Shown piece after piece: positions 1-44,170 of a stretch of 64,000 nucleotides of DNA. The notes beneath the pieces are model-generated. The model saw only the letters and a list, made by a program, of their open reading frames with translations. It was not told the origin of the DNA and did no database searches. Origin of the DNA: Guillardia theta CCMP2712 (taxonomy: Eukaryota; Protista; Cryptophyta); the NCBI RefSeq assembly GCF_000315625.1, contig NW_005434592.1, positions 73,447 through 137,446 on the forward strand. Direction: 5' to 3'. The position numbers and the translations under genes are program-made. Positions within the stretch are counted from its first letter, which is position 1. The number at the start of each line of letters is the position of its first letter.

Positions 1-1925
1 TGCTCCAGTCCTCCACGTTTCCCGACAGCGACAATATCATCTACTTCTCCCTTCGAGCCAACACGCCGCTCGTATCGGCCCTGCATGTCACACTCAGTGG
101 GCTGACGGGTACGGGCACACCAGACAACAACAACTTGCCGATCACGCTATACAACAGCACATTCAAAATGACGTCTGCTATCTGGACGCAAAAATCTGGG
201 AAACTTGACATGACGATCGACACCGTCACTGGTCTCGACGGCGAGCTCTTCCTCTCCTTCACGTTGAAAAATCCTTCCACGACTCAGGCTGCCGTTGATG
301 TCACGGTAGGATGCATCGACTGCGTGACCTGCGTCGACTGTTCTCAGTCGCCCGTCAGCCTGCAGGGCTCCGTCAACGGCTCGATCCTGGGCGTGCAAGT
401 CCCCAAGACTGACTGCGAGCGGAGGAACGGCTCAGCATGGTTCGGCCCCGACTGCTCTCTGCCGTGCTACGGAGTCGTCCAGGTCCCCCCAGGCGGTCAG
501 GCATGGTGCGAATGTCCTGCCGGCTCTTTCGGCGAAAGTTGCCAAACTCAAGTGGTAGCGGACAAGAATCTCTCGGTAGCCCCGCAGCTCGTGCAGCCGA
601 GCTCAGAGCCGGTACCTGTCAAAGGAGCGGACGGGGATGGGGTGGAGCTTCCTCCCGGAGCCCTCACCTCCTCCATCGTCGTCTCAGTGCAAGTGTACAA
701 GACGGATCCTCCGATCCCCAAGGACCAGAGTGACCTCAAGCCCGTGGGGAAGGTGATGGAGCTGAAGCCCGACGGAGTGACCTTCGCTCAGCCCGTCACC
801 ATCGCCACTGCCATCACCCAGGAAGTCATCGACACGGCGAAAAAAGAAGGAAAGGTGCTGGAGATGCGCTTCCTGGATCGGGACAGCGGCAAGTGGGTGA
901 GCACAGGAGGGGAGGTGAAGTATGACCGCGGAGCTCCGTTCCTGCTCACCAAGAGCTATCACTTCTCTCTGTGGGCAGCGATGAGCGGCAACCCTCCCCC
1001 GACCACAGCGACCAACGCGAGCGAGACGACGGCGATGGCGACAACTGCTGTGCCCTCTACCACCGTCACTCCCGCCAAGTCGTCGGACAAGGTCGGTCTC
1101 ATCGTAGGGTTGGTGGTGGGGCTTTCTTCCCTGCTGTTGATCTCAGTGGCGGTCGGGTACACTGTAGCAACCGTCAAGTCTCGGAACAAACTCTACATGG
1201 CCGGAGCAGAGACGAGGACCGAGGAAGGGGATCAGGTCCGGGAGTTCGTCGCTGGCGCCTCTTCCTCCATGGTTGTGGTGCAAGCTTCGCTTGCTCGAGC
1301 TCTTCCACCTCTGGATGAACCAGGTGCTCCTCTCATGTTTCGCAGTACTCTACGTGACGTGGCTCCGTCGCAAGGACCCTCAGCTCCTGTGGACGCCCCC
1401 ACGCCTCCTTCTCCTCGACCTCCCGCCCCCCCCGACTCGGAGCCTTCCAGTCAAGACGTCCTGCCGGCGGCAGGAATCCCAAGCCAGTCTCGAACTCCGA
1501 GCCCTCCTGTGGAGCCTACTTCCAAATTGGAGCTTCCTCTACAGATCTCGTCGATCGGGCAGCTTGTGTTCGACGACAATGTCCTTCAGGCCAGGAGCCC
1601 CAAGGAGACGCTGGTCAAGAGGCGGACCTCCTCCCGCGCCTCCTCCCGCGGCAGCTTGCCGCTGCTATCAGCCATCGAGCGAGGAGAAGGGGCGGCAAGG
1701 AGGACTGAGTCCCCCAAGGCCTTTGTGCCCCAGAGCTCCTTACAGAGGGAGAACAGTCAGCCAGAAGCAGGAGCCGCGAGTCCCATTGACGTTAACGGGA
1801 TGTTTTCTGGAATGTTCGCTTACCTACAATCTGAGGGTGAGGGTAAGGGGAAGGAGGAGGAGCAGGAGGAGGAGCAGGAAGAGGAGGAGGAGGCGCAGAC
1901 ATCGCATCATTCCATCATCCTCTAA
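1..1925 (+). CDS. 3' part of a large type-I membrane surface protein (EGF-like, ZU5-like domain with HFS motif, S/T stalk, TM, Pro/Ser-rich tail); 5' end lies outside the window
   Basis: Frame is open from nt 3 to the TAA at 1923-1925. Contains Cys-rich WFGPDCSLPC...CECPAGSFGESC, ZU5-like GVELPPGAL...ELKPDGVTFAQPVTI, YHFSLW, and TM VGLIVGLVVGLSSLLLISVAVGY. Nt 1-~1050 is near-identical to the reverse complement of ~33529-34576. Confidence 0.85.
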   Translation, partial: LQSSTFPDSDNIIYFSLRANTPLVSALHVTLSGLTGTGTPDNNNLPITLYNSTFKMTSAIWTQKSGKLDMTIDTVTGLDGELFLSFTLKNPSTTQAAVDVTVGCIDCVTCVDCSQSPVSLQGSVNGSILGVQVPKTDCERRNGSAWFGPDCSLPCYGVVQVPPGGQAWCECPAGSFGESCQTQVVADKNLSVAPQLVQPSSEPVPVKGADGDGVELPPGALTSSIVVSVQVYKTDPPIPKDQSDLKPVGKVMELKPDGVTFAQPVTIATAITQEVIDTAKKEGKVLEMRFLDRDSGKWVSTGGEVKYDRGAPFLLTKSYHFSLWAAMSGNPPPTTATNASETTAMATTAVPSTTVTPAKSSDKVGLIVGLVVGLSSLLLISVAVGYTVATVKSRNKLYMAGAETRTEEGDQVREFVAGASSSMVVVQASLARALPPLDEPGAPLMFRSTLRDVAPSQGPSAPVDAPTPPSPRPPAPPDSEPSSQDVLPAAGIPSQSRTPSPPVEPTSKLELPLQISSIGQLVFDDNVLQARSPKETLVKRRTSSRASSRGSLPLLSAIERGEGAARRTESPKAFVPQSSLQRENSQPEAGAASPIDVNGMFSGMFAYLQSEGEGKGKEEEQEEEQEEEEEAQTSHHSIIL

Positions 1926-2401
1926 AGGAATTCAAGTCGACTGCAGCAGCCTCTGGTTTATTCTTGTACATGAGAGGGCGTTATAGATCCTGATGTTTTA
2001 AGTTTAATTTTACTTGATACAATGAAAGCATGCAAACCGAAGCTTGTTCACCCCAGACAACAAGAAGCAAAGATGAGAGGACAGCAAGACAGAAGCGAGA
2101 GAGCAGCCAGAAAGGGAGGACGTGAGAGCAATCTGGTTCATACAGATAGCCATAAGTTCTTTCCCTCTCTCACAACATCAGATCCTCACCCATAATTATC
2201 TCAGCTCTGTCGCAATATCGAACTCCATCCCTCCGCAATCTCAAGACACAACACTAAAACACAAAAGACGACATCATCAAATCTGCTCTGTGGTCTAATC
2301 CACATAGATACCACACAAACATACTGAATGTTTACCTCTGATCACCTTAATTGCCATCATTTCTCATCACCATCATAATCTTCAGTTTGTTTTCGCATGT
2401 T

Positions 2402-2508
2402 TGCGCTTTCGCGCTTCAAAAATTTGGTTTTGGTCATAGCCTGGCGCCACCACGGAAATCTTTAGTAAAAGGCGAAAGATTTGTACGGCATGACGGCACC
2501 AGTGACTT
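2402..2508 (-). ncRNA. U5: U5 spliceosomal snRNA, copy 1
   Basis: Minus strand reads AAATCTTTCGCCTTTTACTAAAGATTTCCGTGG (invariant U5 loop I and its stem). Outer stem CTGGTGCCGTCA/TGGTGGCGCCAG, Sm site AATTTTTG, 3' hairpin GCGC-GAAA-GCGC. Ends are estimated. Confidence 0.95.
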
Positions 2509-2557
2509 GCTAATCCCCATCCCCGCTCCTGCCCATCCCTGCTTCCCCTCCTATTAC

Positions 2558-2576
2558 CCTGCCCCCGATGGCGGGC
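2558..2576 (-). promoter_or_regulatory. Putative snRNA upstream element (PSE/USE-like) of U5 copy 1
   Basis: GCCCGCCATCGGGGGCAGG starts 68 nt upstream of the inferred U5 5' end; the same 19-mer sits at -68/-69 in the other two copies. Confidence 0.75.
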
Positions 2577-2689
2577 TGCGTACCCTCGACTTCCCTATGC
2601 GCTTCCCGACACACCTTGCTCCCGCGCTCGCCCCCGTCTCCTGCTGTCCATCCGCCTTGCTGCTTCGACGTCAGTCTTCGACGTTAGAC

Positions 2690-3427
2690 TAGCATGACAG
2701 GAGGATGATTTGCCGGCCAGTCTGCTGTTGTTTGCCTATCTGATCGCCAATGAAGCCAACAAGGGCTGAGTGGGGTGCCAGGTAGAGCTCTGTGCTGATT
2801 CGTGACAGATCAAGGAGTGGCGTGTTCCCCTGCAAACCCTGCAGTATCGAGATCTGATCTTTCTGCTGTCAAGTAACGAGGAGACTAATCGGTTTGGAAC
2901 TTGAACGGTTAGAAGCCCACTTCAGACTATCGAACCACATCGTTGATGCTATGAGGGACCCCCTCCTCTTTCATCTATGTGCTCTGAACTACTTATCTCA
3001 GCTAACAACTTGAAGTTTCTTGCATCTTGAAATCATTGCTGTCGGTTACTGTAGGGGGTGTTTACCAACCAGCTCACACTATGTACTGAGTGCGGCTGAA
3101 ACTCAACCCGCTAGTGTTCTCCCCTCTTCTTCTTCTAAACTCTTCTTTCGTATTACCTGTGCTGTTTGGGCCCATTCAATCATCCCCAACGCTCCTTGTG
3201 TCTTCTCCATGTCGTCATATCCTCCACTTGTCTTCAGATATCATCGAAGGATCGAGAGCATGGAGGCATGCGTCGTCAAGCAGCACTCAGCTGATTATGC
3301 GGGGCCAGGCATCTCCAGACTTGCTGTGCTCTTCCGTTGGCATGATACGACCAGGATCGGCTCTGCGGCCTTCACGCCATCGCTCGCGTCCTTGAGTGCG
3401 TGGGGGGAACGTGGGGTGAGATAACAT
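2690..3427 (-). CDS. Possible spliced hypothetical protein gene
   Basis: Protein-like minus-strand stretches (GGYDDMEKTQGALGMIEWAQTAQ; DQISILQGLQGNTPLLDLSRISTELYLAPHSALVGF) with plausible splice sites; no recognisable domain. Confidence 0.25.
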
Positions 3428-3943
3428 GGCATTTTTATCTTTTACTCAAGTGGAATTAACGAACAACAGCAAGCTAGGTAGGGAAATAGAGAAAACAAAT
3501 CCGCCTCAACGAGATATAGGAACAATAGAAGAGGCAGCGACAAAAAAATTTGTGGAAGTTAAAATTCATCTCATTTCACCCCACCCTGTCGAATCTCCAC
3601 ACAGAAAACAGTGAAAAGGACGGGTAGTCCACGCTTTTGCTGTTGTCGGGTGATCCAAGATAGGGCAGGGCAGAAGAGAAGGAGAAGGGGGAGGGCGAAT
3701 GAGTGAGCTGCTGAGCAGCAGAGCTTGAGATGGCAGTGGATGAGCCGCGAATCATGTCAGACAGGCAGCAAGAAGCCTGAGATCCTATCTAGCCATGGTT
3801 ACGAGACACGAGCCCGACAGGAAAAAATGAACCAGTAGATCTTCGATAGCTCTGGATAGATTTGGCGAGGTGGGTTTACAATAGTGGGATCAGCTGCTTT
3901 AGTCTATTTCACACGCCTGAATGATCTTCCTGCAGGAGGCAGG

Positions 3944-6900
3944 ATGCAAGCGCTTCATGGCTTCACGCATTCCGCAGCAGCAGAACCGGGGAGCATGGCG
4001 ATGGAGGAGGAGGAAGTCGAAGAAATGATAGGTGAAAACGAATCTTTGATCAGAATCAAGGCCTTCATCTTCGCGCATGTTATTTGTGTATTGGCATCTT
4101 TCTTCCTACTCTTTAGTGAGATTGGATTCGGGGCATCAGTCTTCAAAGGGCTGATCGGAGGGTATGCGTACAGCACTGCAGCTGCTGCAGTTGGCTTTGC
4201 CGTGTTCGTGGTAATGTACGTCTTTGACTTGAACAGCTCAAGTAACGCGGAAAGATCAAAATGCTGCGATCAGCATGCTTTCCTTGCGGTCAAGAACCTG
4301 CTCATGATGATTGTGCTCGCGTCCGTGCTCATCAGCGCAGTCCTGTCGTTCAAGACCCAACCTCAAGCCCCGTTGCTCACATACGTTGTCGTTGGATCAT
4401 TGTACTTTACCCTCATTCGTCTGCGATTCTTTGGTGAGCCTGCTGATGTGCACGCATGCCAGACACTTGCCTGCACCTGTGCCCTGCCCCTCATGCCCGA
4501 CCTCTTTTGCCTGCGCTGCCTGTGACTTGCAGCTGCGTTGCAGGATCCATGGATGTCATCCTGTTCTTGAACATCCTCTCGAGCATGCTTGTGGCAGCAG
4601 GCGTCATCGGCATTGCCGTCTCTCTCATCTGGTCGGGGATCAACAACTTCTGGTGGGGAAGGGAGACCCAGTTGACGTTCCGGGCAAGGTTGCGAGTCTG
4701 TGTGAAGGAGCAGAGGAGTCAGTACTGCTCTGACTACGGCTTCACCGGGTATCAGTGTCAAGCTGGTTGTACCGAGGATGTTGCTGCTTCTGCTTGCGAT
4801 CCGAGCAAGGCAGAGTGCCTTGCTGCTTTCCTCCTGTGGGCGTCTACATACCTCATATCCGTCTTCATCGTCTTCATTGGCCTCGCCTTCTTCTTGTTTT
4901 CCAGCACGCTCCTCAAGAACCAGAGCAGACAGAAAGTCTTTGGCAAGAGAGCCAAGATGTTTCTCTACACCCTCGGGTTTTTCATCTTCTTGCTGTGGGT
5001 TGCAACCTCCGTCACCTGCGCCTCCATGCAAGTCTCGAGCATCGTCTTCTCTTTTGCCGTCATCGGCATTGCTATGCTCGTTGGGATCGTGGTGGGTGTG
5101 ATCGGGCCAGATGAGATCACTGGCAAGATGACGGCAAACAATGCCTTGAAGGTGATGTGACATGTTCTCGATGGATTTCCTCTCAGTAGTCTCAGTCTCA
5201 TTTCTCCAAATCTTCCATGGCATCATTTTGCTTCCCCAAAATCCTCGCTTCCGCGTCCTTTCTGACTTGTTTCATGTTTTCGCTGTCTTGTGCGGATCGC
5301 AGAGCTTCAGGAGGATGGTAAGAGTTGGCTACTTGCATCGCCATGGGCGCTGAGAACCTTTCAGGCGGCGAGCGACGGAGGGAAAGGGTTTGCAATCCTC
5401 GTGCTTTCTCCCGTCATTCCTTTGTTCCTGATGCTTTCCGTGGTCAATCAAGCCGTAAGGCGAGTCTTCTTCCATCAGGACCCGGCAGCATCAGGGGGAG
5501 GGGCGGGAGCAGCTCTAGGCTTCCCGTCCTCCCTCTTCACAGACAGGTATCGCGCTTTCCTCTTGAAGGCGAGCAAGTGGAACTGGACTGTGATCCTCTC
5601 GTGGGTCACCAAGTGGAGCCTTGCCTACTTCGTGCTGCAGGTAGGGGCAGGAATCTGCGTCACCCTCTTCCTGGCATGGCTCAACATCAAGCTGGCGGGG
5701 CTGAACGTTTTCCTCATCTCCTTCCTCATCCTCGTCATCGGCCTATTTCTCTTCGCCATCCCGGTTGTCCCCGGTGTCCCGGCCTACGTCGCTTGCGGCG
5801 TCCTGATAGCTTCTGCTGGGGAGAGACAGTTCAACTCGTTCGCTCTCGCCTGCCTCCTCGCCATCTTCGTGGCAGCTCTCTGCAAGCAGCTCGCATGCGT
5901 GCTGCAGCAGAAAGTGTTCGGGGAGATGATGGGGAAAAGCGTCAAGATCCGATCAATGGTTGGCATCAACAGCGAGACTATCAAGGCCATCAAGGTCATC
6001 TTGGCGAAGAAAGGGATGTCCGTGGGCAAAGTGATGCTCCTCGTTGGAGGACCGGTGGGCAACTCCTCTTATTCGACCTTGCTCCTGCTCCTGCTCCCTC
6101 CGGGCTCCTCCTCTTGCCTCTCCTGCCTCTGGTGCCTGCTGCCTCCTCCTGCCTCTGCTGTCTCCTGCCTCTTCCTCCTCCCCCTTGTTTTCCTCTTCGG
6201 CGCTAACCACGCCGATACGAGCAGGACTGGCCGACCAGTGTCTTGACAGGCATCCTTCACTGCTCAGTTGTGGAGATGCAGATCGGAACCCTTCCAATCA
6301 TCGTCCCTATCGCATTTACCGTCATGACTGGAGCTGGCATGTACAAGGCAGCAGCAGATCCCAATGGGATCTGGCCATCGCTCAATACCATCTTCCTCCT
6401 CCTCGCCTCCATCGGGCTGATGGGGACGGGAGTCGGGTTCATGCTGTACCTCGCCGACTTCATTGATGCACACCGGGAGGAGATTGAATCGATTCCCGAC
6501 GAGGAGGACGTGAAGGAGTACGACACGCAGATGCAGGAGGTCAAGGATCAAATCGCTCGGCTGTCGCAATGGGAAAGGCTATCGATCATGTCACGCCTCT
6601 CCTGCTATGGCTCCTCCTGATACCCTCTACAGGTCCAAGTCTATCCTCCTCATTTCTGCTGTCCTTGGCATCGTCAGCTTCTGGATTTTCAGCATTGACA
6701 GCAGCGGCTGCTTTGAGGTCCTTCTGCCTTCCTTCCCTCCTCTCTCCCCGCCTCTTCCCCATCTTTTCTTCTCTCCTCCCTTCACCAGAATCTTCTACGT
6801 CCTCCTTCCCCACGTGTCCTCCCCAGTCCCCATCACCACTCCTCTCTTTCCCTCCATCTCCATCTCCATCTCCTCGTCCTCTTACGAGCTTCACCTTGTT

Positions 6901-7552: not shown

Positions 7553-7910
7553 AGCCTTCGGGGGCCTTGCGGCCGGCAGTTTGCTCTTTCGTATTGAAGT
7601 TTTGTAATAAGTTACACGCCACAGTGCCATGATCGGAGTTCAAGTATGGACTGTGACGGTCACTCACTGTCAACTCCGGCCCGGCCCTCAAACAACCAGT
7701 GCCAGTGATCGGACCGAAAAGCCTGTCACGGGGCATGATGTCGGATTTTGAATCATCAGTGAGAGGAGAGCCTCGGAGTTCGTTTGGAGAGTAGCGGGCC
7801 GCCGGCCGCCGGGCCGGCGGAGGCTTGCACTGCAATCAATGTCGCCGGACACTGCCGCAGCGACTGAGTCACCGTGGGCCGACTCGTTACTACGGTACCG
7901 GGTCAAACAC

Positions 7911-8358: not shown

Positions 8359-9761
8359 ATGGTTGAAGATTCGAGGAACAGGAAGGGTTTGAAAGCAGCT
8401 CTCAGCGCTGCCGTCCTGTTGCTGGTGGTTGCGAGCGCAGCATGGCTCCATAGAAGAGATGTCGGGGCCTCCACCTCTCTCTTGCTGAGCAGGGACTATC
8501 CAGGAGGAGACTTGCTGTTCTCGTCAAGCGCGCAACCGACAGGCTCATATGGTCAGTTAGCCGAGCGGCTGCAGCATATCAGCCCTACACTCAAGTATGC
8601 CATCATCCGACATATCTACCCGGAACAGGACGCCAAGGATCTTGAGAGCTACTTCCGGCAGGGAGACATGCAAGCAGAGATCCCCATGGTCCCCCAGCAA
8701 AGAGCGGAGGTTCCTCTAAAAGAGGTAGCTATCCAGCAAGGAGCAGAGGTTCCTCTGAAAGAGGTAGCTATCCCCGTCAAGGAGGTAGCGGTGCCATTGG
8801 AAGAGGTTGAAATGCCCGTGAGCATGTACAAAGGAGAAAGGGCCTCGTTCCAGCAGCCACTCACAGAGGCTCCTCGTGCCAAGACAGTGAATTACCTTCC
8901 TGCGGCTCGCGTCACCAACTTTCCTCAGCAGGGAGGAGTCAACCTTGACTTCGTGATGCCCAAGGCAGCGCAGAGGCAGAGTGTCTTGAGGAGGTACGTC
9001 GTCGAGAGAGCCCCGCAGAGGAACGTCGAGGTCCACATGCAGGAGGTGGCGCAGCCCCGGCTTCCTGTCCGAGAAATCATCATCCGAGAGGTGTCGTTGC
9101 TTGATGTTGCGTTGTTCGCGCGTGCTGATCGGAGCCTTTCAGCACTCGAGGAAGAAGGACGACACTGAAAGGAAGCTCCGGTGATGACCGATGCTCATGT
9201 TTCATCCTCCTAGACTCCGTCTTGATGCCCTGAGAACTCGCACAACACCCTTATCATTGACTCTTCTCACATGGTTGTTGTCGCAGGGTGCTTCAGGGTG
9301 AGATCAATAACGAGCGAGTGGTGGAGGTGAGTTGCGGTAGCCCGGAGCCGCTGCCCTGATCCGATGTGCAGCAAATCCACTACAAGTCGCTGTATGACTA
9401 CATCACGTCCATCGTTAGGAGCATCCGCGTCCTCTCTCGGCCGTCTCCTCCTCTCATCCCTGTCTTCGATCGCCGCCCCCTCGACGCTGCTAAGGGCATC
9501 ATCCGCCGTGTCAGGATCATCCAGAGGGCTGAACCATATCCCTCCACCCCTCCACCCTCTCCTCCTCCTCTTCCTCCCCCTCCCCCTCCCCCTCCCCCTC
9601 CTGTCAACCCTCAACCTTACGAGCCTCCTCCTCCTCCGCCACTTCCCCCTCCTCCGCCCCCGCCCCCTCCTCCTCCACCACCACCTCCACCTCCTGCTCA
9701 AATGGTTGAGCCCTCGAAGCCGGATTTTACAGGAAGGTTCCCTGACCCGGTAGGCGATTGA
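8359..9761 (+). CDS. Hypothetical protein with N-terminal anchor/signal, AEVPLKEVAI repeats and polyproline C-terminal region (spliced)
   Basis: 269-aa ORF with hydrophobic ALSAAVLLLVVASAAWL; downstream exon 9366-9761 is Pro-rich. Confidence 0.6.
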
Positions 9762-23660: not shown

Positions 23661-23748
<88 letters not shown>

Positions 23749-23749
23749 T

Positions 23750-23790
<41 letters not shown>

Positions 23791-31697: not shown

Positions 31698-31716
31698 GCC
31701 CGCCATCGGGGGCAGG
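31698..31716 (+). promoter_or_regulatory. Putative snRNA upstream element of U5 copy 2
   Basis: GCCCGCCATCGGGGGCAGG at -68. Confidence 0.75.
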
Positions 31717-31765
31717 GTAATAGGAGGGGAAGCAGGGATGGGCAGGAGCGGGGATGAGGATCGGC

Positions 31766-31872
31766 AAGTCACTGGTGCCGTCATGCCGTACAAATCTTTC
31801 GCCTTTTACTAAAGATTTCCGTGGTGGCGCCAGGCTATGACCAAAACCAAATTTTTGAAGCGCGAAAGCGCA
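31766..31872 (+). ncRNA. U5: U5 spliceosomal snRNA, copy 2
   Basis: Loop I GCCTTTTAC at 31801-31809 within the canonical stem; Sm site AATTTTTG; 3' hairpin GCGCGAAAGCGC. Confidence 0.95.
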
Positions 31873-31922
31873 AACATGCGAAAACAAACTGAAGATTATG
31901 AAGGTGCTGAACGGATGATGAC

Positions 31923-31954
<32 letters not shown>

Positions 31955-32180: not shown

Positions 32181-35100
32181 CTAGATGGCAACTTCTTGAA
32201 CCGTCTCTCCTTCCTTGTGCTTCTTCTTCTCCCTCTTCTTGTGGCCGTACGCCTTGCGGAGAGAGTTGGACCTCGCTTCGAGCAGCTGCGGAGAGAACTC
32301 AGCGCTGGACAGGCTTGTGACTTCGTCCGAAACTTCGATAGAGGAAGGACGTTCAGCAAGGAGGAGGCGTCGGGAGCTTCGATTCGATAGTCTCCTCCCT
32401 GTCTCCAGCACATGCTTTCTGTGCTCGCTCTTGAGGAATGATTCCATCCAGGCGTCTGAGTCTCTCCTCGACCTCTCTGCCGCCTTCTTGTCCTCTGTCA
32501 CGATCATCTCGTGAAGCTCCTCCGCCCTCTTGCTTTGCCGCTCCTCCGCTCTTCTCCGATTCTTCCCTTGTCCTGCTGTCTTCTCTCTCTCAACGAACCT
32601 GCTATCCCCTGCAGTCCTCGCTCCCTGCTCTCCTCCTCTCGCCTCTCCTGTATGTGACCTTGGCATATCCCCTGCAGTCCTCGCTCCCTGCCCTCCTCCT
32701 CTCGCCTCTCCTGTATGTGACCTTGGCATATCCCCTGCAGTCCTCGCTCCCTGCCCTCCTCCTCTCGCCTCTCCTGTATGTGACCTTGGCATATCCCCTG
32801 CAGTCCTCGCTCCCTGCCCTCCTCCTCTCGCCTCTTCTGCATGTGATCTGGGGATATCACGGACTGCATCATTTTCTTGTTTGGTAGGAGCGTTGCCTGC
32901 TGCTCTTGCCTCTCCTTGGAATGATTCTTCTGCCCCACTTGGTGCTGGTCGGGCAGTTCTGTTCATTTGGTCTTTGAGTTCCCGCGAGAAAGATTCGAAC
33001 TCATCCATGTCCTGAGCGGTCAGGCTGGTGATCGAAGTCTTGATGGAGGCCTTCAGGCTCTCTTCAAGCATGCTTCTCTTCAGTTTCTTCACGTGCTCTA
33101 TCGTCCCTCGCCTGCTTCGCCTGCCCTTGGCTGCTGCCTCCACCTCCATCTCCTTCTCTTTCTTCTCCGACAACTTGATCTCTGTCGGCGCAACCACTTT
33201 TGTCTCCTCCTGTTCTTGCACATCCTGGTATACAAGTTCTGCCGACGCTGCTGCGTCTGGAGCTGCCTCCGCAGTTGAAGGTGACCCTTCCTGCTGCTGA
33301 GGCATTACAGACTCGAAGTACTCCTCAGCGTCTCTCGTCGGACTTGGTACGTTCTGAACTTGCTGAGGCTCCTTGGACGTCTTCTTGCCGTGCCTTGACA
33401 CGGTGTAGTACCATCCCGTTATCGATAAGGCTAGAACCGACGTGACACCGGCGGCGATCCCAATGAACAAGACAACGTTGACGGAGCGAGTCTTCTCGGG
33501 GGGCATGGTGGTAGAGGGAAGGACGACGGCAGTTGTCGCCATCGCCGTCGTCTCGCTCGCGTTGGTCGCTGTGGTCGGGGGAGGGTTGCCGCTCATCGCT
33601 GCCCACAGAGAGAAGTGATAGCTCTTGGTGAGCAGGAACGGAGCTCCGCCGACATACGCCACCTCCCCTCCTGTGCTCATCCACTTGCCGCTGCCCCGAT
33701 CCAGGAAGCGCATCTCCAGCACCTTTCCTTCTTTTTTCGCCGTGTCGATGACTTCCTGGGTGATGGCAGTGGCGATGGTGACGGGCTGAGCGAAGGTCAC
33801 TCCGTCGGGCTTCAGCTCCATCACCTTCCCCACGGGCTTGAGGTCACTCTGTTCCTTGGGGATCGGAGGATCCGCCTTGTACACTTGCACTGAGACGACG
33901 ATGGAGGAGGTGAGGGCTCCGGGAGGAAGCTCCACCCCGTCACCGTCTGCTCCTTTGACAGGTACCGGCTCTGAGCTCGGCTGCACGAGCTGCGGGGCTA
34001 CCGAGAGATTCTTGTCCGCTACCACTTGAGTTTGGCAACTTTCGCCGAAAGAGCCGGCAGGACATTCGCACCATGCCTGACCGCCTGGGGGGACCTGGAC
34101 GACTCCGTAGCACGGCAGAGAGCAGTTGGGGCCGAACCATGCTGAGCCGTTCCTCCGCTCGCAGTCAGTCTTGGGGACTTGCACGCCCAGGATCGAGCCG
34201 TTGACGGAGCCCTGCAGGCTGACGGGCGACTGAGAGCAGTCGACGCAGGTCACGCAGTCGATGCATCCTACCGTGACATCAACGGCAGCCTGAGTCGTGG
34301 AAGGATTTTTCAACGTGAAGGAGAGGAAGAGCTCGCCGTCGAGACCAGTGACGGTGTCGATCGTCATGTCAAGTTTCCCAGATTTTTGCGTCCAGATAGC
34401 AGACGTCATTTTGAATGTGCTGTTGTATAGCGTGATCAGCAAGTTGTTGTTGTCTGGTGTGCCCGTACCCGTCAGCCCACTGAGTGTGACATGCAGGGCC
34501 GATACGAGCGGCGTGTTGGCTCGAAGGGAGAAGTAGATGATATTGTCGCTTTCGGGAAACGTGGAGGACTGGAGCAGTTTGACGTACTCGAACTTAGGAA
34601 AGATGCAGGAAGACGGGCCCTGAGGCTTCTGCTCGCAGGTGAAGGCAGGAGAGCTGGAGAAACGACAGAGAGCTGTTGCCTCTACCTTGCAGCTGCTCGA
34701 GCATCCGTCTCCGTCCAACACGTTCCCGTCATCACAGTCCTCGGTCGGCAACTTCAACCCGTCTCCGCATACTCGCGGGCATTCGGCGTTTGCAAGATCG
34801 AGAGGAGAGGAGGCGACGGCTCCTTCTCCGACGACGTTGATGGCCGACACTTTGAGGGTAAAGTTCTGGGTGGTAGAGTCGAAGAGCTGGGGGTAGTCCT
34901 GTCTCGTGATCAACACGCTTGTCTGCAATGTTGAGATGACAAACTCTTGATTGACCACCAAGACGACGCGAAAGCTGGAGATGAGTTGACGGTTTGCTGT
35001 CCCATCGCCAGTATTAGATGGGATCGTCCAGGTGAAGTTGAGGGTGTTGAGGTCGAAGCGAGAGACGGTGAGAGACTGAGGGACCGTCGGGGTAGTCAAG

Positions 35101-38100
35101 GCGAGGAACTTGAAGCCAGAGGAGTCGAGCGATGGGCTGCACGTCTCGCCGAACAGGTTGACTCCGATGGCATCATAATGGTACACTTGTCCTTGCTCAA
35201 GGTTATCGAGCCTCACGCTTTGCACTGCAGAGCAGTTGCTGCTGACTGTCTTGGTAACGACAGAGCCTTTCTCCGGTTTGAGGCTGACCCGATAGGAGAC
35301 AGTCTTGCTCGTCGCGTTCTGTTGGCAAGCAAGGATTGTTCTCGGATCCTTTCTCCAGCTGATCTCTACCGCCAGCGACCCTGCGTAATTGTACCACACC
35401 TGGACCGGACAGCGAGTTCTTCCCATGACGATCACTCGCACGCGACTATCCAACTTGAGAGAGTTGCTAAGGCTCGCATCATACAAGCTGGCGGTTATCA
35501 GCAGGTCGAACTCGATCGAAGAACCTTCGTCGGGCTCTGAGTTTGATATCCGGAAGGACAAGTACCCTGCGGCATGGTCAGGTTGAGGCTCTTGAGGACA
35601 GGGAGGACTGGCAGACCTGATTGATTGATCTTGGGAGCCAGGGAGAAGCTCGGATCGATACTGCCTGACACTGTGAAGGTGGTCACTTGAAGGAAGTCCT
35701 GCCATTAGGGTGAGAAGCGAACATTCCGACAACTGCCACGTCAGCACCTGTGTGCATGAAGGGTCTCCTGCAAGGTTCAAGTCCTGGACGTAGACAACTC
35801 GACGGTCGCTGATGGCATCGAAGGCGAAGGCAAGCTGATGGACCATGAGGTTGATCTCTTGCACGCTTGACTGCAGCACGAGAGATCAGTCAAGGCCAAG
35901 GAAAGCGGAGGCCCAGCGCTTACCGTCACGTTCAGCTTCAGCTCGGGGAAGGCGACGGGACCGAAGATGGTCAAGACATGAGAAGCGAGACTGAAGGGGC
36001 TCAGAGCAGACGTCGACGTGTCAGGAACATTCAGCTGAATTCCCTTCGACACTTGCGCGAGCTGTCCTAATTGGCTGACAACCACGACAGCCTTGCTGTT
36101 GGGCGCGCGGTAGTAGTCTGCGGTAGCCAGCAGACTGGCAAGGGCATGAGCGGGGAAGCTGACGGTGAGCGAGGAATTTGGCAGGATGTCGCAGTTGAAG
36201 GAGAAGAAGATCCTGAAGACCGTCGCGCGGCAGAACAACATGGTCACCTGCGAGAGTTGATCGATCGTGAAGTTGGCTCGGAAAATCTTGAGCGGGTCAT
36301 AACCACCGGGGATACCGATGACGGTGATTCCTGGCTTGCTGACGAGAGCTTCCGCCAACGGCAGGTGTAAAGCTGCATAGCTCGCCTGGACCACAAGCGT
36401 CGCCCTGAGCTTGAGAGGAGGAGAGTCCTGCTCTTGGTCGGGGTTGATCAACGACAAGTTGAGAAAGTAAGTCTCACTCGCATACATGTCCATGTGCGCG
36501 ATGACAATCAGCTCATCGCTCAAGGTACGATTCAGCACAGCAAACTCCGACGAGACATTGTAGAGTGCTGGAAGTCCCACCAGCCCACGCAGAGTCATCG
36601 TTGATCCCATAGCAAAGTCGATGTTGCAGGAGATGCTGAACACGAGCTTGTTCTCCTTCATCACCAGCGGGTTCGTCTGGATGCCCGCGAGCAGGTCAAA
36701 CCCTGCTCGCACCAGCTTCCCGACGAGAGACCCTCCTGCCACTCCAAACACAGAGACAGAACGCGACGAGAACTCGCTAGTCACCTTCAACCCGGTCACG
36801 ATCGGATCAAGGTAGCACGTGACCGACACTGCAGCTGCATTGCTCTCTTTCGCTCCGTTGACCAGCACGACCGTCACGTTCAGGTCGTCGCCAGCTGGCA
36901 AAGTCTGCAGAAAGTTGCTGAGCACCAGGCTCCCTCCCACCAGGCGGCTCGAGTTGATCAGGCTGGCCGGAGACTGTCTGACGCTCACGACGCCCTGCTG
37001 CTGGTCGAACATGCTCATCCCGGTGATGGTGCAGCTTGCCTGCTTGGGCGTCTCGAAGTTGAAGCGAAGGGACAAACTCACGTTGTTGAGCTGACCGACG
37101 ATCGGGTTGTCTTGGTAGACGAGAGCGTTGGTGATCGTCGCACGGTAAGTCACGAAGGGGCTGCTGCCATTGATGACGCCGAAGAGGGTCGAGCGATCCA
37201 TCAGCATCGCCCTCGTCTCACTCTCAGAGTCGAAGACTCCCAGCTCCTCCACCAGCTTGACCTGCAACGGCCTGTCCGCCTGCTCGCAGTCGCCGTTGAT
37301 GACGCGGAACGACACATTGAAGGCGGAGACGTTCGAACCCGAGAGCGTCAGCACTAGAGTATTATCGCTGATGCTCGTGAAGGAGTCGAGCAGCGTTGGC
37401 ACACACGAGGGAGCTGGGGTGATGAGCAGCCGCGAGTCCTTGGTGATGGCGAACCTGGAGACGACGTGCAGGGAGATCACGTTGGGCGAGCTGGTGAAGG
37501 GAATCGTCTGCGAGATCGTCGCCTCCTGTATCTCCGGCATCACTGTCAAGAATGGCTTCCGCCCGCCCGGGACCAGGAAAAGGTCCTGCTGGGTCCCAGC
37601 TATGGTGGTCACTTCTGACCAAGAGTCGTACAGCCCGCACTCCACCATGAGGCGGGCGGGAAAGTCAGACGGGGAGGACAGGGGGGTCTGACTGTTTCTG
37701 ATGCTCAAGAGGAGGACATAAGGAGGTTGGTTGTCACCTCCCAGGAACTTGAAGGAGGAGTTGGAGCTGATGCTGACAACCTGCCATGCAGACGACAGCG
37801 ACGCGGCCTGCGAGACTTGCTGTGCAGGCCAGTTTGCAAGGAAGAGTTGAGACCCGACGGTGAGTGCGACGTTGAGGGTGAGGCTGAGAGTGAGCTGGTT
37901 GGATGAGCCGACGAAGGGAGAGGATTGCTGGAAGCTCCAAGAGGAGATGCGAGGACGAACAATCTTGAGGGGTAACGAGCCTCCCTCAATGCCGAACCGA
38001 GAGGAAGGCTGCTGAAGCAGCGACACCGAACTCAAGCTCGCGTCCCATACGCCGCTCTCGATGAACCCGCTCAGCGTGGGGCTGACGGCTACCTGCTCGC

Positions 38101-41100
38101 TCCCTCCGTTTCTCACTGTCACATCCAGCATGACGACGAAGCTGCTCCGGTCGCTCGTCGCCTCCACCACTATGAAACACCCGCTCGCAGAGGTAGAGGT
38201 CACCCTGAAAGCAGCAGCATTCACAGTCGCGTCGACATCCGCCATGCCGCACAAGCCGCTGAGAGTCAAGCGAGAGCCTTGGACGAGGAAGGTGTTGGTC
38301 TTCACAGAGACCGTGAGAGTGTTGGAGGCGTCGGTGAGAGGAGAGCTCTGATAGATAGACGCGTTGACGATGACAGGAGCCCATGTGTCAAGAGGATCCT
38401 GCAACGAGATCCCGTAGGGGTTGGAAGCAGCCACCGGGGTGAAGTTGAAGGCCAGGGCGAAGTTGTTGCTCTTCGAGCTTGTGATGTCCATGGAGACGTG
38501 GGGGGCTCGAAGGACGTAGGACGGGTTCCTGACGTCGACGAGGAGATAGTAGTTGACGTTTGCCTTCATCGCGTCAGAGGCCTCCATCGCAAACTCAAGG
38601 TAATCTTCGCCTGTCGTCACGTTGCGGAACGTCTGCACCCTGCCGTCTTGAGAGGTGAAGTTGAGAGACCCGCTGGTGAGAGGCGACTGCAGCAGAGGCG
38701 AGCGAAGCCTGAACTTGAGCCCATCGCTCCCTCTGAGCTCGACATTGAAAGCAAACTTGAGGTTCAGACGGTTCAGCGAGCCCACCAGTGGGTTCACTGA
38801 TGACACCGTCGGTGATACAACCTTCGGGGCGACAAGCAAGCAGATGCGGCCGCTCGTGTCGGTCTCGGTCGTCATGCGAGTCTTTGACAAGAGAGAGATC
38901 CTGTCTCCGACTCCGACTCCTCCCTCGACCGACACGTTGCATCCCTCTAGCCGCTGACCTTGGCTGTTCATGACGGGAACCCACACACGGATGCTCGTGT
39001 TGACTGCGATGAGGTCCAACACCTTGACGGTGAAGCCATCGGCCACCTGCTTCACCTCAATCGCGCTGTCAAGGTTGCTGTAAGCTGGTGCCTTCGCTTC
39101 ATTGTAGACGTAGAGCTGGTCGGGAATGCCTGTGATGTAGAGGTAAGAACGGTTCGTCATATCCACGTCCACTCTCATCTCCATCGAGATCGTATTTTGC
39201 ATGAACGAGACTGATCTCGAGTGCTGGATGTGGGCGAAGAGGATCTTTGGGACATGAACCTTGAACGGGTTGGAGGCGTCCTTCACACCTCCGATGGCTT
39301 GGGAGCTCAACGTGACCCCTTGCGATGGCAGAGAATAACGATTCCCACTCACCACGAGCCTTCCCTGGACGAGAAAACTCGATGGAGCCCGTTCGACCAC
39401 CGGGTTTGTGAGCTCGAAAGCGACGAGAGCCTCGTACTGATCGAAGCTCGAGTTGGCAACCAGCAGGAGCTCGCCAGTACGAAGAATCACGGCTCTGCCT
39501 CCGAAAGTTACTTTTGACGCGGACAAAGTCTGGTCAGGCTGAGCTGATGCAAACTGGATTTGCTTCTGCTGGCACACGGCTGCTGTGGAATAGACGACAT
39601 TCTGCTGATCATTCGAAGCGGCGGAGCTCAACAGTCTCCTTCTGCTGCTGCTGGGAGCGGGGGTCGTCCAATCTGTGATGGTCTCTAACGCCTGCATTGT
39701 TGTCGACGAAGAGCTGCTGTCCAAGGGTGTGGAGGAGGAACTTGACAGGAACGCTTTGGAAGTAGGAAAGGAATTTGTTTGGAATGGTGCTGGTGTCGAC
39801 GACGAGCTGCTAAAGGCAGGTGTAGACGACGAGCTGCTAAAGGCAGGTGTAGACGATGAGCTGCTAAAGGCAGGTGTCGACGATGAGCTGCTCCAAGTAG
39901 ACGTCGACAACGAGCGGTCCTCTATGGGAGTAGACGATGGGCTTGAAAGCTCGGCCGAGGCTGCAGAAGTAGGAGCACTCGTTTCGATCTTGAAGGGTGT
40001 CGAAGAGGAACTGCTGTCAATGATCTTGGTCGAGAATGAGCTGGTTTCCACGGTTGTAGGTGCTGATGTCGAGCTAGTCTCTGATGCTGCTGAAGTCGAC
40101 GAGGTGCCAAACGTAGACTCAATGTTTTGCTGAGGCAAGGGAGTCGAAGTGAACCCTTCTTCTGCCCTCACTGTTGTAGTGACTTCTCCTCCCACTCCCA
40201 GCGGCGATGTAGAGGTTGCTGCTGGGCTTGTCTGAGCCTCTTGCTGCAATGATGGAGTCGAAGTAAATTGCTCTTCTTCGACTGTTGTGGTGACACTTCC
40301 CTCTGCAGCAGCATACGTGGATGAGGCTGCTGGGGTAGACTGAGCCTCCTGTGGCAGCAACTCAGTCGAAGAATACCCCAGCTGAGAGAAGCTTGTCGTT
40401 GATGTAATGCCTTCTGATTCTGCAGGGGTAGAAGATGAGCTTGACATATAGACACCCTTGGTTGAAAATGAAGCGCTTTGCAACTGCTCGACTGGCGTGC
40501 TGGTAACGGACAGAGCATAATCACTGGTGGAAACGCCTTCAGATTGACCACCTGTTGTCAAAGAAATGGTGCTTTCCGAATTCCCACCAGCGTATGTTGA
40601 GGCAAGGGTAGTGGGCGTCGGCGCGATGAGTACTCCGGTAGTCGAGGTGACCGTTTGCAAAGTTGTCGTCGGAAACAAAGTTGTTGTCGAAGTCAAAAAC
40701 GTCGAAGTCGAAGTCGAAGAAGTCGTTGGAGGAGTCGGAGACGTCGTTGGAGGAGTCGGAGTCGGAGCAGGAGTTGAAGATTCTGTTGATGACGTCGTGT
40801 CTGCTTGAGTTGTGGTTGATGATGTCGGTTCAAGTGGTGTTGTCGTCGTCAACGATGTCGTTGCATATGAATAACAAGAATCGATATAATCCCAGATGGC
40901 GCTGAATCCAGTGAGTGTAAAAATGGATCCAGTGTCAAAATGCACATTGGGTCGTAGAACAATCGAAACTCTGTTGCTGATGTTTGCCAGTGCACTCGAT
41001 TGACGAATAGAAGCAAAGATCAACGAAGGAATGACAGTCTTCCCTGGGACAGAGCCGTTCAGAACACCCAGGACATCTGCATAGATGACAGTGAGGTGCA

Positions 41101-41515
41101 CGTTCACTGCATTGAGGCTAAGAGTCAATGCACTGCTGCCCTGATTTGTGAAATTCTGGTTTTTGACTGAGAATGAAATCTGATATGCTGTTGCTTGAGA
41201 TTGGATGATTTCAGTGTTCGAAAACAACAAGCAGGAAGATGCATTCCAGGAGCTTGTCAGCGAAAGCTGCGGACTTGAAACTGCAGGTACACTTTCTCCA
41301 ACAGCATATTCGAAGTCAGTTAAAGCACAAATAGAAAAGTTTGATCGTGCTTCAACATTCTGTGCGACTGTTAGAGAGAGAATCAAGACATTTTGACCAT
41401 TCGCGATAGGGTTAGTCTGACGAATGGACGCTGCTGATATTGAAAACCCAGACCCATTTGCTGACAAAACAAAACAAGAAAGGATCGAAAGCCAGCATTG
41501 CATGCGAGCTTCCAT
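32181..41515 (-). CDS. Giant (~3,050 aa) type-I surface glycoprotein: signal peptide, ~11 beta-rich repeats, mucin-like block, FN3-like domains, Cys-rich CGDG/CDDGN repeat, EGF-like, ZU5-like/HFS, TM, charged tail
   Basis: The 1934-aa and 1232-aa ORFs join in frame across GT-AG intron 35871-35923. Two further introns (35699-35747, 49 nt; 35567-35616, 50 nt) together keep the frame. Signal [70 protein letters not shown]. Confidence 0.88.
32603..32858 (-). repeat. Coding 63-bp tandem repeat, 4 copies, in the cytoplasmic tail
   Basis: Encodes (GDMPRSHTGEARGGGQGARTA)n. Confidence 0.92.
33529..34576 (-). repeat. Inverted near-identical duplicate of 1-~1050
   Basis: Direct sequence comparison; the shadow ORFs are duplicated too. 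Similarity probably continues beyond the window's left edge. Confidence 0.95.
39793..39892 (-). repeat. Coding 27-bp repeat (SSSSSTPAF), about 4 copies, in the mucin-like block
   Basis: Unit TGT(C/A)GACGA(C/T)GAGCTGCTAAAGGCAGG on the plus strand. Confidence 0.85.
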
Positions 41516-42250: not shown

Positions 42251-42631
42251 GGCCCGTTTCCCGCCGGCTCCCAGATTCCAGATTCCAGATTTTTTCATAC
42301 AAATATAAGTCAATTTCTTTTTTTCTCCTCCAAATGTTTTGGAGAACTCAACTATAAGTCATTTTAATTTGAGAATGAAACGATGCGGTTGACTTTCCCA
42401 GATTTTGCTTTTCGAATGGGCAGGCACTATATGGAAATATACTATTAGCTCAATCGAGAAAAATTGTTAGAAGGTAGGGAGGGTACGCTTGGAGCATCAA
42501 ATATGAACAGGCAGTGGACCCACCCCCTGTCAGTATGTATTGAAAGCACCGGTGAATATTTCGGGGTAAATTTCAAATCACTTTGAATAAAGTCAAAAAT
42601 CTGGAATCTGGGAGCCGGCGGGAAACGGGCC
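42251..42631. mobile_element. MITE, Tourist/PIF-Harbinger-like (381 bp)
   Basis: 34-bp perfect TIR GGCCCGTTTCCCGCCGGCTCCCAGATTCCAGATT; TAA TSD at 42248-42250 and 42632-42634; AT-rich non-coding interior. Confidence 0.9.
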
Positions 42632-43994
42632 TAAGAGGTCACTGATCGGATCTTGAAGTTCAAGTTGCCAGTCGGTGCCCGGCGGTGTCGGCCCGGGCGC
42701 CGCCCCGGGGGCCGGCCCGCGACTCGGCGACGGACTCCGCGGTGACCGGCGGCGGCGTGCCGCGGTCACCGTCCGCCGGGACTCAGTACGGTGGAGTGAG
42801 TCCGGACGGCGGTCCGGTCCGGGCCCCAGCCTGTGAGCCCGGAGTCCGATAGCCGTCACCGCGTGACGCGGCGGCACTGCGGCACTATGACGTGATCGGA
42901 CGCCGGGTCACCGGTTCCCGGGCCCCGGGCCCGGGGGACGGGCCGGCCCGGTGCAGTGGGTCGGACACCAGTGGCACAGTCACCGTGCCAGGCTGCCGGG
43001 GCCGTGGCACCCGGCGTCGCGGTTGCGGCGGCCGCGGCCACTGCCGCTGACGGGTCAGCGGCGTCGCCCCGGCGTGCCACGGTGATCATCCGGTGACAGG
43101 GGCCGGGGGGCATATACAGGCTCCGAGCGGGCCGGGCCTCCGGGAATCGGCGCCGGAAGTTGAAAGCGCCGGGGCGCCGGCCGGGCACCGCCAAGTTTGG
43201 AACCGCCGGTTCAAGAAGGACTTGAACCCTGTGACCGTCACCGGCGTCGGTGCCGCGGTGCGGCGCCGGGCCGCCGACTCTCGACTTGCCGCCAGCTTGC
43301 CGCATGATCCAGGCCGCGTTCAACGGTTGAACGGTTTGCCGAGTCACTGAAGTTCTGGCTTGGCAAAGAGAGTCCAATTCCTACTAGTGACTTAACTGCA
43401 ATCAACTTGGATGATACAGTTCTTGTCATCGTTGACTACCGTAGTACCGGGTGCCAAAGTTACTCAGTAGTGACAATCCTCCGTAAGACAGCTTGGAAAC
43501 CAATCGAACCCTTCACTTATCATTTCCAGTTCAACGGTTGTGACAGTCAACATCGAAGACGGTGATTCATCCCAATCTGAGGAAATCGCGGATAATAGTC
43601 ATCTCCAACTGTCTCCCCTTCTTCACAACTCCCCCTTCCCCCCCCCTCTCGTCCCCGCTCTTCCCAAGTTCATGCTCACCTCCCATTCCCATCTCTCCCT
43701 CGCGTTTTACTCCACTTCTTCATTTTTATAGTCCTCGTCCTCGTCCTCGTCCCTCTCTTCATGGACCGAGGATTCTTCGTCTTTATCCTCCTCGAACAAG
43801 GAATCCTCGACCTCGTCCTCCTCGTTCTCCTCCTCGTCCCACCTCTCCCCCCTCCTCGTCCCCCTCCTCATCCTCGTCCTCCTCGTCCTCCTCGTCCTCC
43901 CCGCCCGCCCCCCTCCCTTCTCCTCCCATCCCACAAACTCCCATCAACAAACTTGGTAATAGCCCTCCTCCCCCCACAATCCCCAGCGTAAATT

Positions 43995-44013
43995 GCCCGC
44001 CATCGGGGGCAGG
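43995..44013 (+). promoter_or_regulatory. Putative snRNA upstream element of U5 copy 3
   Basis: GCCCGCCATCGGGGGCAGG at -69, although the spacer to the gene is unrelated to that of copies 1 and 2. Confidence 0.78.
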
Positions 44014-44063
44014 CACAGGGGTAAAAGGCAGAAGGAAAAACCACAGGAGAACCGGTTTCGATT

Positions 44064-44170
44064 AAGTCACTGGTGCCGTCATGCCGTACAAATCTTTCGC
44101 CTTTTACTAAAGATTTCCGTGGTGGCGCCAGGCTATGACCAAAACCAAATTTTTGAAGCGCGAAAGCGCA
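44064..44170 (+). ncRNA. U5: U5 spliceosomal snRNA, copy 3
   Basis: Same 107-nt sequence as copies 1 and 2 (loop I, Sm site, 3' hairpin). Confidence 0.95.

Follow-up and report, generated by a model that had tools for sequence, protein, structure and literature searches.

The U5 snRNA genes of Guillardia theta and a local duplication of a giant receptor gene

The U5 genes of the window

We analyzed a stretch of 64,000 nt of the Guillardia theta genome, hereafter the window. It contains two paralogous genes, A and B, encoding giant receptor-like type-I membrane proteins, and exactly three matches to the U5 snRNA model RF00020 above the gathering score (cmscan; 72-73 bits against 40), which we refer to as U5a, U5b and U5c (table 1). 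All three copies cover model positions 1-117, i.e., the full model. In the cmscan alignments, loop 1 matches the consensus exactly and the Sm site AAUUUUUG is found together with the terminal GC stem of the 3' stem-loop. The coding regions are identical in the three copies except at the first base, where U5c carries the variant.

The three genes lie within 42 kb in mixed orientation, with spacings of 29 kb and 12 kb. Ordinary protein genes are interspersed among them. The genome-wide RF00020 check proposed in an earlier note on this DNA returned no further copy: covariance-model and DNA searches agree that the 87.1-Mb assembly contains three U5 genes, all of them inside the window. In a published survey, three nuclear U5 genes that differ at a single position were reported for G. 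theta (PMC6461891). The U5 genes of the cell are confined to one small cluster and, since U5 is not detectable in the nucleomorph (PMC6461891), these clustered nuclear genes may serve both spliceosomes; import of a nuclear U5 into the nucleomorph compartment was proposed in the same survey.

Table 1. Coordinates of the U5 genes, their cassettes and the receptor paralogs in the window
Feature	Position	Strand	Details
Paralog A, 3' part	1-1925	+	Stop 1923-1925; ORF and homology to B
A-specific TM helix and proline/serine-rich cytoplasmic tail	1094-1925	+	Unrelated to the B tail at the DNA level
U5a cassette	2341-2576	-	PSE 2558-2576, U5 RNA 2401-2509, conserved 3' flank of ~37-60 nt
U5a RNA	2401-2509	-	cmscan RF00020
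U5b cassette	31698-31934	+	PSE 31698-31716, U5 RNA 31766-31873, conserved 3' flank
U5b RNA	31766-31873	+	cmscan RF00020
Paralog B, complete	32181-41515	-	ATG at 41515, stop 32181-32183
B-specific TM helix and cytoplasmic tail	32181-33474	-	DNA comparison with A
Duplication arm common to A and B	33475-41440	-	A coordinates -6618 to 1093 relative to window start
U5c cassette	43995-44249	+	PSE 43995-44013, U5 RNA 44063-44171, shared 3' flank
U5c RNA	44063-44171	+	cmscan RF00020

The two receptor paralogs

Paralog B encodes a signal peptide, an S/T-rich mucin-like region, a large beta-rich ectodomain, a transmembrane (TM) helix and a charged tail. Its domain matches are fn3 (weak), DUF4215 and a ZU5-like module (sub-threshold). 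Intron 1 spans positions 35871-35923 (53 nt, GT..AG), more small introns are located near 35600-35750, and the tail contains a 63-nt (21-aa) tandem repeat at 32540-32917. The coding sequence of paralog A extends ~6.7 kb upstream of the window, into locus L007, and corresponds to the annotated-model protein P0001 (2348 aa). Two other proteins, P0002 and P0003, are distant relatives.

The arrangement described in the earlier note was confirmed. Both paralogs end tail-to-tail with a convergent U5 gene, the 3' end of U5a lying 475 nt past the stop of A and that of U5b 307 nt past the stop of B, and gene B is bracketed by U5b and U5c in the same orientation (12,298 nt from start to start). The third copy, U5c, is divergent from gene B, 2.5 kb from its ATG. 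We found no receptor-like sequence 3' of U5c; the matches there consist of the shared U5 3' flank and low-complexity sequence only.

Two blocks of homology connect the loci: an inverted gene-body block of 7.7 kb, 92-98% identical, and a U5a/U5b cassette block of 237 bp, 94% identical (A 2341-2576 vs. B 31934-31698). These blocks are colinear and have equal relative orientation in both arms, and no assembly gap is found between the A and B copies. Divergence along the gene forms a mosaic. The ectodomain core (2,022 codons) is 98% identical with a dS of ~0.03, including the part of A up to ~1093 that lies inside the window, and a 5' block of 192 codons has a dS of 0.165. Both ends, i.e., the signal-peptide end on one side and the TM helix, cytoplasmic tail and 3'UTR on the other, are saturated, with identity at the random level. 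Colinear inverted blocks within one unit and tracts of heterogeneous divergence are the properties of a single inverted duplication with later gene conversion. No other duplicated genes were detected by tblastx in the 29-kb spacer or in the outer flanks. A larger ancient mirror-image duplication was also considered, and tblastx of the spacer halves and outer flanks yielded nothing.

The earlier note had described the DNA between ectodomain and U5 as unrelated in the two loci. This is correct at the DNA level (A 1094-2340 vs. B 33474-31935: no significant similarity, even at word size 7), but the stretch is not purely intergenic: it starts within the coding sequence just before the TM helix and spans the whole cytoplasmic tail. 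At this junction, identity is 100% at positions 947-1050 and then drops to near random within ~100 nt. Residual homology is visible at the protein level, with 39% identity over 38 aa in the TM region and similar signal-peptide ends. Neither tail contains a Pfam domain at E ≤ 1. Our genome search found no donor of the B tail, and the A tail has no close copy genome-wide. A proline-rich sequence on C70 aligned to the A tail (33% over 167 aa, E 6e-5); this match is weak and was taken as compositional. With near-identical ectodomains and differing TM helices and cytoplasmic tails, A and B resemble paired receptors.

Promoters and cassettes of the snRNA genes

A 19-nt PSE is located at -50 to -68 in three of the three U5 copies, and its 10-nt core is found at an equal distance, ~-59 to -68, upstream of U1, U2, U4, U5 and U6. 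The core matches the genome 11 times and its reversed control 0 times. At two PSE-bearing loci without known snRNA, an Rfam scan at E ≤ 0.1 returned nothing. What appears to be the common promoter element of all five spliceosomal snRNA gene types of this cryptophyte can be read straight from the genome. Judging from these motifs, each U5 gene is autonomous, with a predicted complete snRNA-type promoter of its own. Two metagenome scans, one with a Guillardia-type U5 41-mer and one with the PSE core plus loop 1, gave no matches to cryptophyte-type U5.

Similarity among the U5 flanks stops beyond the PSE and ~40-80 nt 3' of the gene. A GAT microsatellite comes after the conserved 3' flank of U5b. 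The 48-nt spacer from the PSE to position +1 has three differences between U5a and U5b (94% identity) and includes a GGGGATG motif that is also found upstream of U1 and U4. The spacer of U5c is unrelated, so that U5c stands apart by both its first base and its promoter-proximal spacer. Because the U5c spacer is unrelated while those of U5a and U5b are 94% identical, the U5a/U5b cassette needs a recent conversion or a constraint of its own if the duplication is old.

Other snRNA genes of this genome present the same pattern. The three tandem U1 genes have only 258-317 bp in common (98-99% identical), and their spacers are unrelated; in the two U4 genes, the common stretch is 267 bp. As a rule, snRNA copies of this genome (U1, U4) are homologous in the cassette only. 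With their clustering, near-identical cassettes and unrelated flanks, the U5 genes also form a clustered snRNA family.

The earlier note proposed that identical U5 cassettes serve as recombination substrates that copy, invert and shuffle the receptor genes, in which case the adjacency would be causal. Indeed, U5a and U5b in inverted orientation, and U5b and U5c in direct orientation, share at least 109 nt of perfect identity, an inverted U2 gene pair exists on another contig, and the A/B homology goes precisely as far as the outer boundary of the U5 promoter element. The U1 and U4 cassettes show this last coincidence at their edges as well, which indicates a conserved functional cassette rather than a breakpoint. 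Moreover, an exchange between U5a and U5b only inverts the 29-kb spacer and duplicates no receptor; one between U5b and U5c yields 12.3-kb units in tandem, which are not observed. The duplicated segment reaches 7.7 kb from U5 and neither of its ends lies within U5. Since family members also arise by local duplication, inverted copies included, where no U5 is present, and 11 other members lack U5, we consider recombination anchoring very improbable and find the claim unsupported.

The receptor family elsewhere in the genome

Family loci were identified by searching the genome with an 802-aa membrane-proximal piece. This yielded 11 other loci with 27-34% identity in the membrane-proximal module. 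In the 6 kb of 3' flank of these 11 loci, we detected neither a match to U5 or another snRNA at E ≤ 1 nor a PSE core. One family trio, on C146, was recently duplicated locally, with one copy inverted, without any U5.

These results contradict a positional coupling of U5 and this family: 11 other loci lack U5, no U5 is present outside the window and U5c has no receptor on its 3' side. Family members without U5 and a U5 without such a neighbor are the findings that the earlier note had itself equated with a single local duplication. Two U5-receptor adjacencies would far exceed chance if they were independent. However, the two adjacencies go back to a single duplicate pair, A and B, and therefore effectively count as one rather than as independent cases. 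The apparent coupling is one local duplication, i.e., ordinary genome history and no rule for the family.

A functional link might also be envisaged, in which the convergent U5 acts as a 3' terminator or insulator of the receptor gene, or both are co-regulated, and selection keeps them together. The short convergent spacing (307 and 475 nt) was retained despite complete turnover of the spacers, and Euglena, too, has a U5 gene placed convergently behind another gene (PMC2784804). Nevertheless, there is only one evolutionary event, and a co-duplicated pair simply inherits its spacing. The other family members do without U5, U5c does without such a partner, and every U5 gene has a predicted complete promoter of its own, of a type common to U1, U2, U4 and U6. 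We consider a functional link very improbable.

Evolution of the locus

The account that we favor, and consider probable, is an old local inverted duplication of a receptor gene together with its U5 gene, whose ectodomain was later homogenized and in which the adjacency is a passenger. An ancestral segment of ~9 kb would have carried a giant gene for a type-I membrane receptor with a convergent U5 gene behind it. This segment would have been duplicated once, locally and in inverted orientation, to give geneA> <U5a ... 29 kb of unique genes ... U5b> <geneB. Unconstrained DNA, i.e., the promoter/signal-peptide end, the cytoplasmic tail, the 3'UTR and the intergenic spacers, would then have diverged beyond recognition, which implies that the event is old. 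Purifying selection and short-tract gene conversion would have kept the U5 cassettes alike, as for the other multi-copy snRNAs of this genome, and later gene conversion would have homogenized the 7.7 kb coding for the ectodomain, with the tract ending just before the TM helix. Both this succession of events and the role of gene conversion in the homogenization are inferred; conversion is suggested by the heterogeneous divergence between two sequences, A and B. If so, a single duplication carried U5 along as a passenger, and no functional link underlies its adjacency to the receptor genes. The earlier suggestion of a "receptor gene + U5" duplicating unit applies to this one local inverted duplication and does not extend beyond it.

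Alternatively, a 9.3-kb receptor and U5 segment could have been duplicated recently (~2-3% divergence), and one copy could later have acquired a different TM helix, tail, 3'UTR and 5' end, either through non-homologous recombination or from an unsampled family member by exchange. The core dS (0.03) and the divergence of the neutral-looking U5a/U5b spacer (3/48 nt) are similarly low, as a recent event predicts, and homology breaks off rather abruptly at the TM junction. This scenario, however, requires at least two separate in-frame replacements, one per end, as well as a block of intermediate age (dS 0.165), and the assembly offers no source for either tail. The similarity that persists in the TM region and the signal peptide resembles the old divergence of homologous sequence, and U1 and U4 show that cassette-only identity occurs without flanking duplication. 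We therefore consider a recent duplication unlikely.

Finally, U5a and U5b could act as homology seeds for a flip-flop inversion of the 29 kb and for repeated receptor gene conversion; the identity of U5a and U5b might then be maintained by selection on the RNA. We give this variant very little credence. If it were true, receptors with the same ectodomain and different tails, an algal "paired receptor" pair, would evolve in concert, and the U5 adjacency would be mechanistically useful and no mere passenger.

Comparison with known systems

The arrangement at this locus resembles known organizations of snRNA genes. Human U1 and U2 arrays are clustered multi-copy snRNA families that evolve in concert. 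The U5 genes of G. theta similarly present near-identical coding regions, their own PSE and 3' box and physical clustering, with similarity limited to the functional cassette and diverged flanks. Unlike those families, the Guillardia cluster is loose, of mixed orientation and spread among protein genes, and forms no tandem array. Fish U2-U5 and U1-U2-U5 clusters and Drosophila U2-U5 and U4-U5 linkages are other examples of clustered snRNA families that evolve in concert (reviewed in PMC3464664).

The earlier note knew of no described case of such a linkage. This is true in a narrow sense only, as the Euglena U3-U5 linkage is a close precedent: there, U5 lies in convergent orientation behind the other gene, and the pair occurs in multiple copies whose spacers differ, which the authors attribute to duplication of the locus (PMC2784804). 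Both systems present a convergent downstream U5 in several copies and intergenic spacers that differ in length and sequence. In contrast, the partner is a 9-kb protein-coding receptor gene in G. theta and a small RNA gene in Euglena, two linked copies derive from one event here vs. twelve in Euglena, and the linkage is no property of the partner family here.

The receptor genes themselves resemble vertebrate "paired receptors", which have near-identical ectodomains with differing TM helices and cytoplasmic tails and are inverted duplicates homogenized by gene conversion. A and B have no homology to vertebrate receptors, and we found no recognizable opposing signaling motifs in their tails. Like the vertebrate pairs, they combine 98% identical ectodomains with unrelated tails and a divergence mosaic with sharp tract ends. 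The A/B pair constitutes a clean protist case in which the ectodomain was kept identical and the tails diverged.

U5 genes and their giant neighbors

Exactly three sequences of the window matched Rfam above threshold, all of them U5 spliceosomal RNA genes scoring 72-73 bits (the gathering score of the U5 model is 40). Each of these genes (U5a, U5b and U5c) contains the consensus loop 1, the Sm site and the terminal stem. The genome-wide search for U5 that the earlier note had suggested was conducted on the whole assembly (87.1 Mb, 669 contigs), and the covariance-model and DNA searches concordantly returned these same three genes only. This number agrees with a published survey, which described three U5 genes with one variable position in the host nuclear genome of G. 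theta and none in the nucleomorph (PMC6461891). The entire U5 family of the organism therefore lies inside the window, where it spans 42 kb without assembly gaps. Here the variable position is base 1, at which U5c departs from the base shared by U5a and U5b. No cryptophyte-type U5 genes were found in two metagenome scans.

As the earlier note had observed, U5a and U5b lie tail-to-tail with two giant genes encoding type-I membrane proteins (gaps of 475 nt for gene A and 307 nt for gene B), gene B is bracketed by the same-orientation genes U5b and U5c, and the DNA between ectodomain and U5 is unrelated in the two loci. Even at word size 7, comparison of these stretches gave no significant similarity. 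U5c is located 2.5 kb from the start of gene B and is divergent from it.

The two open frames of gene B are joined by a 53-nt GT..AG intron, with further small introns just downstream. Its product comprises a signal peptide, an S/T-rich mucin-like region and a very large ectodomain, followed by a transmembrane (TM) helix and a cytoplasmic tail. Domain searches, run on separate pieces with the exons unjoined, yielded only DUF4215, a weak fn3 and a sub-threshold ZU5 among Pfam matches. The ZU5 match (E 0.057, scoring 14 bits where the cut-off is 21) concerns the membrane-proximal module, which has an HFS motif at its end, and its ZU5-like reading is unconfirmed by sequence profile. Gene A, the inverted paralog of gene B, starts ~6.7 kb before the window and corresponds to database protein P0001 (2348 aa).

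Features of the window and related sites in the assembly (C, contigs; L, loci; negative positions lie upstream of the window start)
Feature	Position	Strand	Remarks
U5a	2401-2509	-	cmscan vs Rfam
U5b	31766-31873	+	cmscan vs Rfam
U5c	44063-44171	+	cmscan vs Rfam
PSE of U5a	2558-2576
PSE of U5b	31698-31716
PSE of U5c	43995-44013
PSE/core sites elsewhere	C2:80504/82219/84138; C4:1192881/1193419; C22:748369; C19 near 609839 and 614684
Further PSE copies	C60:314861-314879 (L017); C164:21536-21554 (L018)		2 mismatches each
U2 inverted repeat	C19:609465-610682 and 614017-615059		head-to-head; arms ~1.2 kb, 92-95% identical
Gene A, end	1925
Membrane-proximal module	618-990
Gene B	ATG 41515 to stop 32181	-	two long open frames
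Gene B intron	35871-35923
Gene B tail repeat	32540-32917		63-nt tandem repeat
Gene-body block	A -6618..1093; B 41440..33475		98% over 6.3 kb; 92.5% over 5' 576 bp; indels in mucin region
U5-cassette block	A 2341-2576; B 31934-31698		94% identity
C146 trio (L030, L032, L033)	C146:77761-79158, 104092-105708, 138506-139633, plus 3' flanks		two direct, one inverted
LTR retrotransposon	52720-59258		Ty3/chromovirus type
gag-pol ORF	53464-58512		1682 aa, intact
Purine-/pyrimidine-rich repeats	9550-9700, 23567-23878, 26139-26264, 43710-43932, 45631-46112, 59930-60339, 62213-62383	both	9-12-nt period

A promoter element common to snRNA genes

An identical 19-nt element is present at -50 to -68 of all three U5 genes. 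With up to two mismatches allowed, the genome has 11 occurrences of it and none of the reversed control, and the occurrences outside U5 include sites upstream of three tandem U1, two divergent U4 and one U6 gene. The U2 genes, too, are preceded at this distance by its 10-nt core, so that the core CCCGCCATCG is common to the U1, U2, U4, U5 and U6 gene types at about -59 to -68; at U6 it lies a few nucleotides closer to the gene and is accompanied by a TATA-like box near -30. Judged from sequence, this element reads as the predicted proximal sequence element (PSE) of snRNA genes in this genome, and each U5 would thus be an autonomous gene. Around two additional copies, on C60 and C164, an Rfam scan gave no match even at E<=0.1; these copies may mark unannotated PSE-driven small RNA genes, e.g. 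minor-spliceosome or other snRNAs.

Local clusters of two to three copies are the rule for snRNA genes here: U1 forms a tandem triplet, U4 a divergent pair, and U2 has one single gene in addition to two inverted genes that are separated by 5 kb and have arms of 1.2 kb. Among the three U1 copies, similarity (98-99%) is confined to 258-317 bp and the spacers of 1.4-1.6 kb are unrelated; homology of the two U4 copies is restricted to 267 bp. Multi-copy snRNA genes in this genome are thus generally identical over the cassette (promoter element, RNA and 3' flank) only. The homology between the U5a and U5b cassettes stops exactly at the outer PSE edge; we rejected this edge as a breakpoint because the U1 and U4 copies likewise share the cassette only. 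Unlike the U1, U4 and U5 copies, whose identity is confined to the cassette, the U2 pair has arms that reach ~0.9 kb beyond the genes on their upstream side.

From PSE to +1, U5a and U5b have a 48-nt spacer in which they agree at 94%, but that of U5c is unrelated, suggesting either a recent sequence exchange between U5a and U5b or a common constrained motif. A GGGGATG motif lies at about -10 to -20 of U5a and U5b, in this spacer, and likewise of U1 and U4; U5c lacks it. The distinct first base and spacer of U5c may be relevant to the published proposal that a single nuclear U5 could serve the nucleomorph.

Homology between the two receptor loci

Comparing the window, extended by 20 kb on its upstream side, with itself revealed two colinear inverted homology blocks between the A and B arms, one covering the gene body and one the U5 cassette. 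The stretch between them (1.25 kb in A, 1.54 kb in B) is the unrelated one: it begins in the coding sequence just before the TM helix and extends through this helix, all of the cytoplasmic tail and the 3'UTR. The TM regions present 39% amino-acid identity over 38 residues; the tail of A is proline/serine-rich with an acidic end, and that of B is charged with 21-aa repeats. These are encoded by about 5-6 copies of a 63-nt repeat, 95-99% identical. At the 5' side, the signal-peptide ends are recognizably similar and the DNA further upstream is unrelated. Synonymous divergence (dS) is 0.03 in the core (2,022 codons), 0.165 in the 5' block (192 codons) and saturated at both ends. No other mirrored paralogy was detected with tblastx in the outer flanks or in the 29-kb spacer, which holds ordinary genes, e.g. 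a PHO80-type cyclin.

The pattern is most simply read as an old inverted duplication that copied a single unit, receptor gene plus convergent U5, and in which the ectodomain-coding part would later have been homogenized by gene conversion, as the comparison of the two copies suggests, while the unconstrained parts would have diverged completely. Alternatively, the duplication could be recent and its ends replaced. No close copy of either tail exists elsewhere in the genome, so neither tail is a recent import from a donor; we consider this alternative improbable.

U5 and the wider receptor family

The earlier note had proposed that U5 genes are positionally coupled to this receptor family. Using the membrane-proximal module as query, we found at least 11 further family loci on 7 other contigs (27-34% identity over about 430 aa), most with the family-typical TM helix directly after the module. 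In the 6-kb 3' flanks of all 11 other loci, a permissive Rfam scan (E<=1) gave nothing but sub-threshold hairpin-like miRNA matches, with neither U5 nor any other snRNA among them, and the PSE core was absent from all of them; no receptor lies at the 3' end of U5c. Three of these loci, on C146, are recent local paralogs, one of them inverted; downstream of the conserved module they are 99% identical over 2.3 kb and 95-96% identical across 0.9 kb. They contain proline- and glycine-rich stretches, and no snRNA gene is nearby. Local and inverted duplication in this family thus occurs in the absence of U5. General coupling thus fails, and the distribution is the one that the earlier note itself equated with a single local duplication. 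Its duplicating unit of receptor plus U5 is supported for one such event, as indicated by the colinear inverted blocks, and not as a recurrent family linkage. Nothing that we found supports a role of the cassettes as recombination anchors, nor a functional coupling of receptor and U5.

Two of the three U5 genes lie within 500 nt of family 3' ends, where the expected count is about 5e-4 (about 13 loci, 87 Mb) if positions are independent. Two adjacencies treated as independent are very improbable; A and B, however, form a duplicate pair and so count as a single ancestral adjacency. Where genes are densely packed, some gene will be close to any snRNA gene, and the identity of this neighbor is a label attached post hoc. 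The order, orientation and short spacing are alike in both arms, which makes independent juxtaposition unlikely and supports co-duplication of the pair.

Other features of the window

The window also carries an LTR retrotransposon encoding protease, RT, RNase H, integrase and chromodomain. By blastn, the terminal repeats match at 100% identity along 635 nt, which gives the element the look of a very young insertion. The purine-/pyrimidine-rich repeats scattered across the window look like low-complexity microsatellite-type sequence, part of it inside acidic coding stretches.

Comparison with known systems

With ectodomains 98% identical and TM helices and cytoplasmic tails unrelated, the A/B pair resembles paired receptors in pattern only; no signaling motifs were found in the tails. 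A protein-coding partner of U5, as here, is unusual, but for U5 to hitch-hike on a segmental duplication is an ordinary mechanism. The closest described case to the receptor-U5 arrangement is Euglena gracilis, where each of 12 U3 snoRNA genes is followed by a convergent U5, with spacers varying in length and sequence, which the authors attributed to locus duplication (PMC2784804). U2-U5, U1-U2-U5 and U4-U5 linkages have been reported in fishes and Drosophila (PMC3464664).
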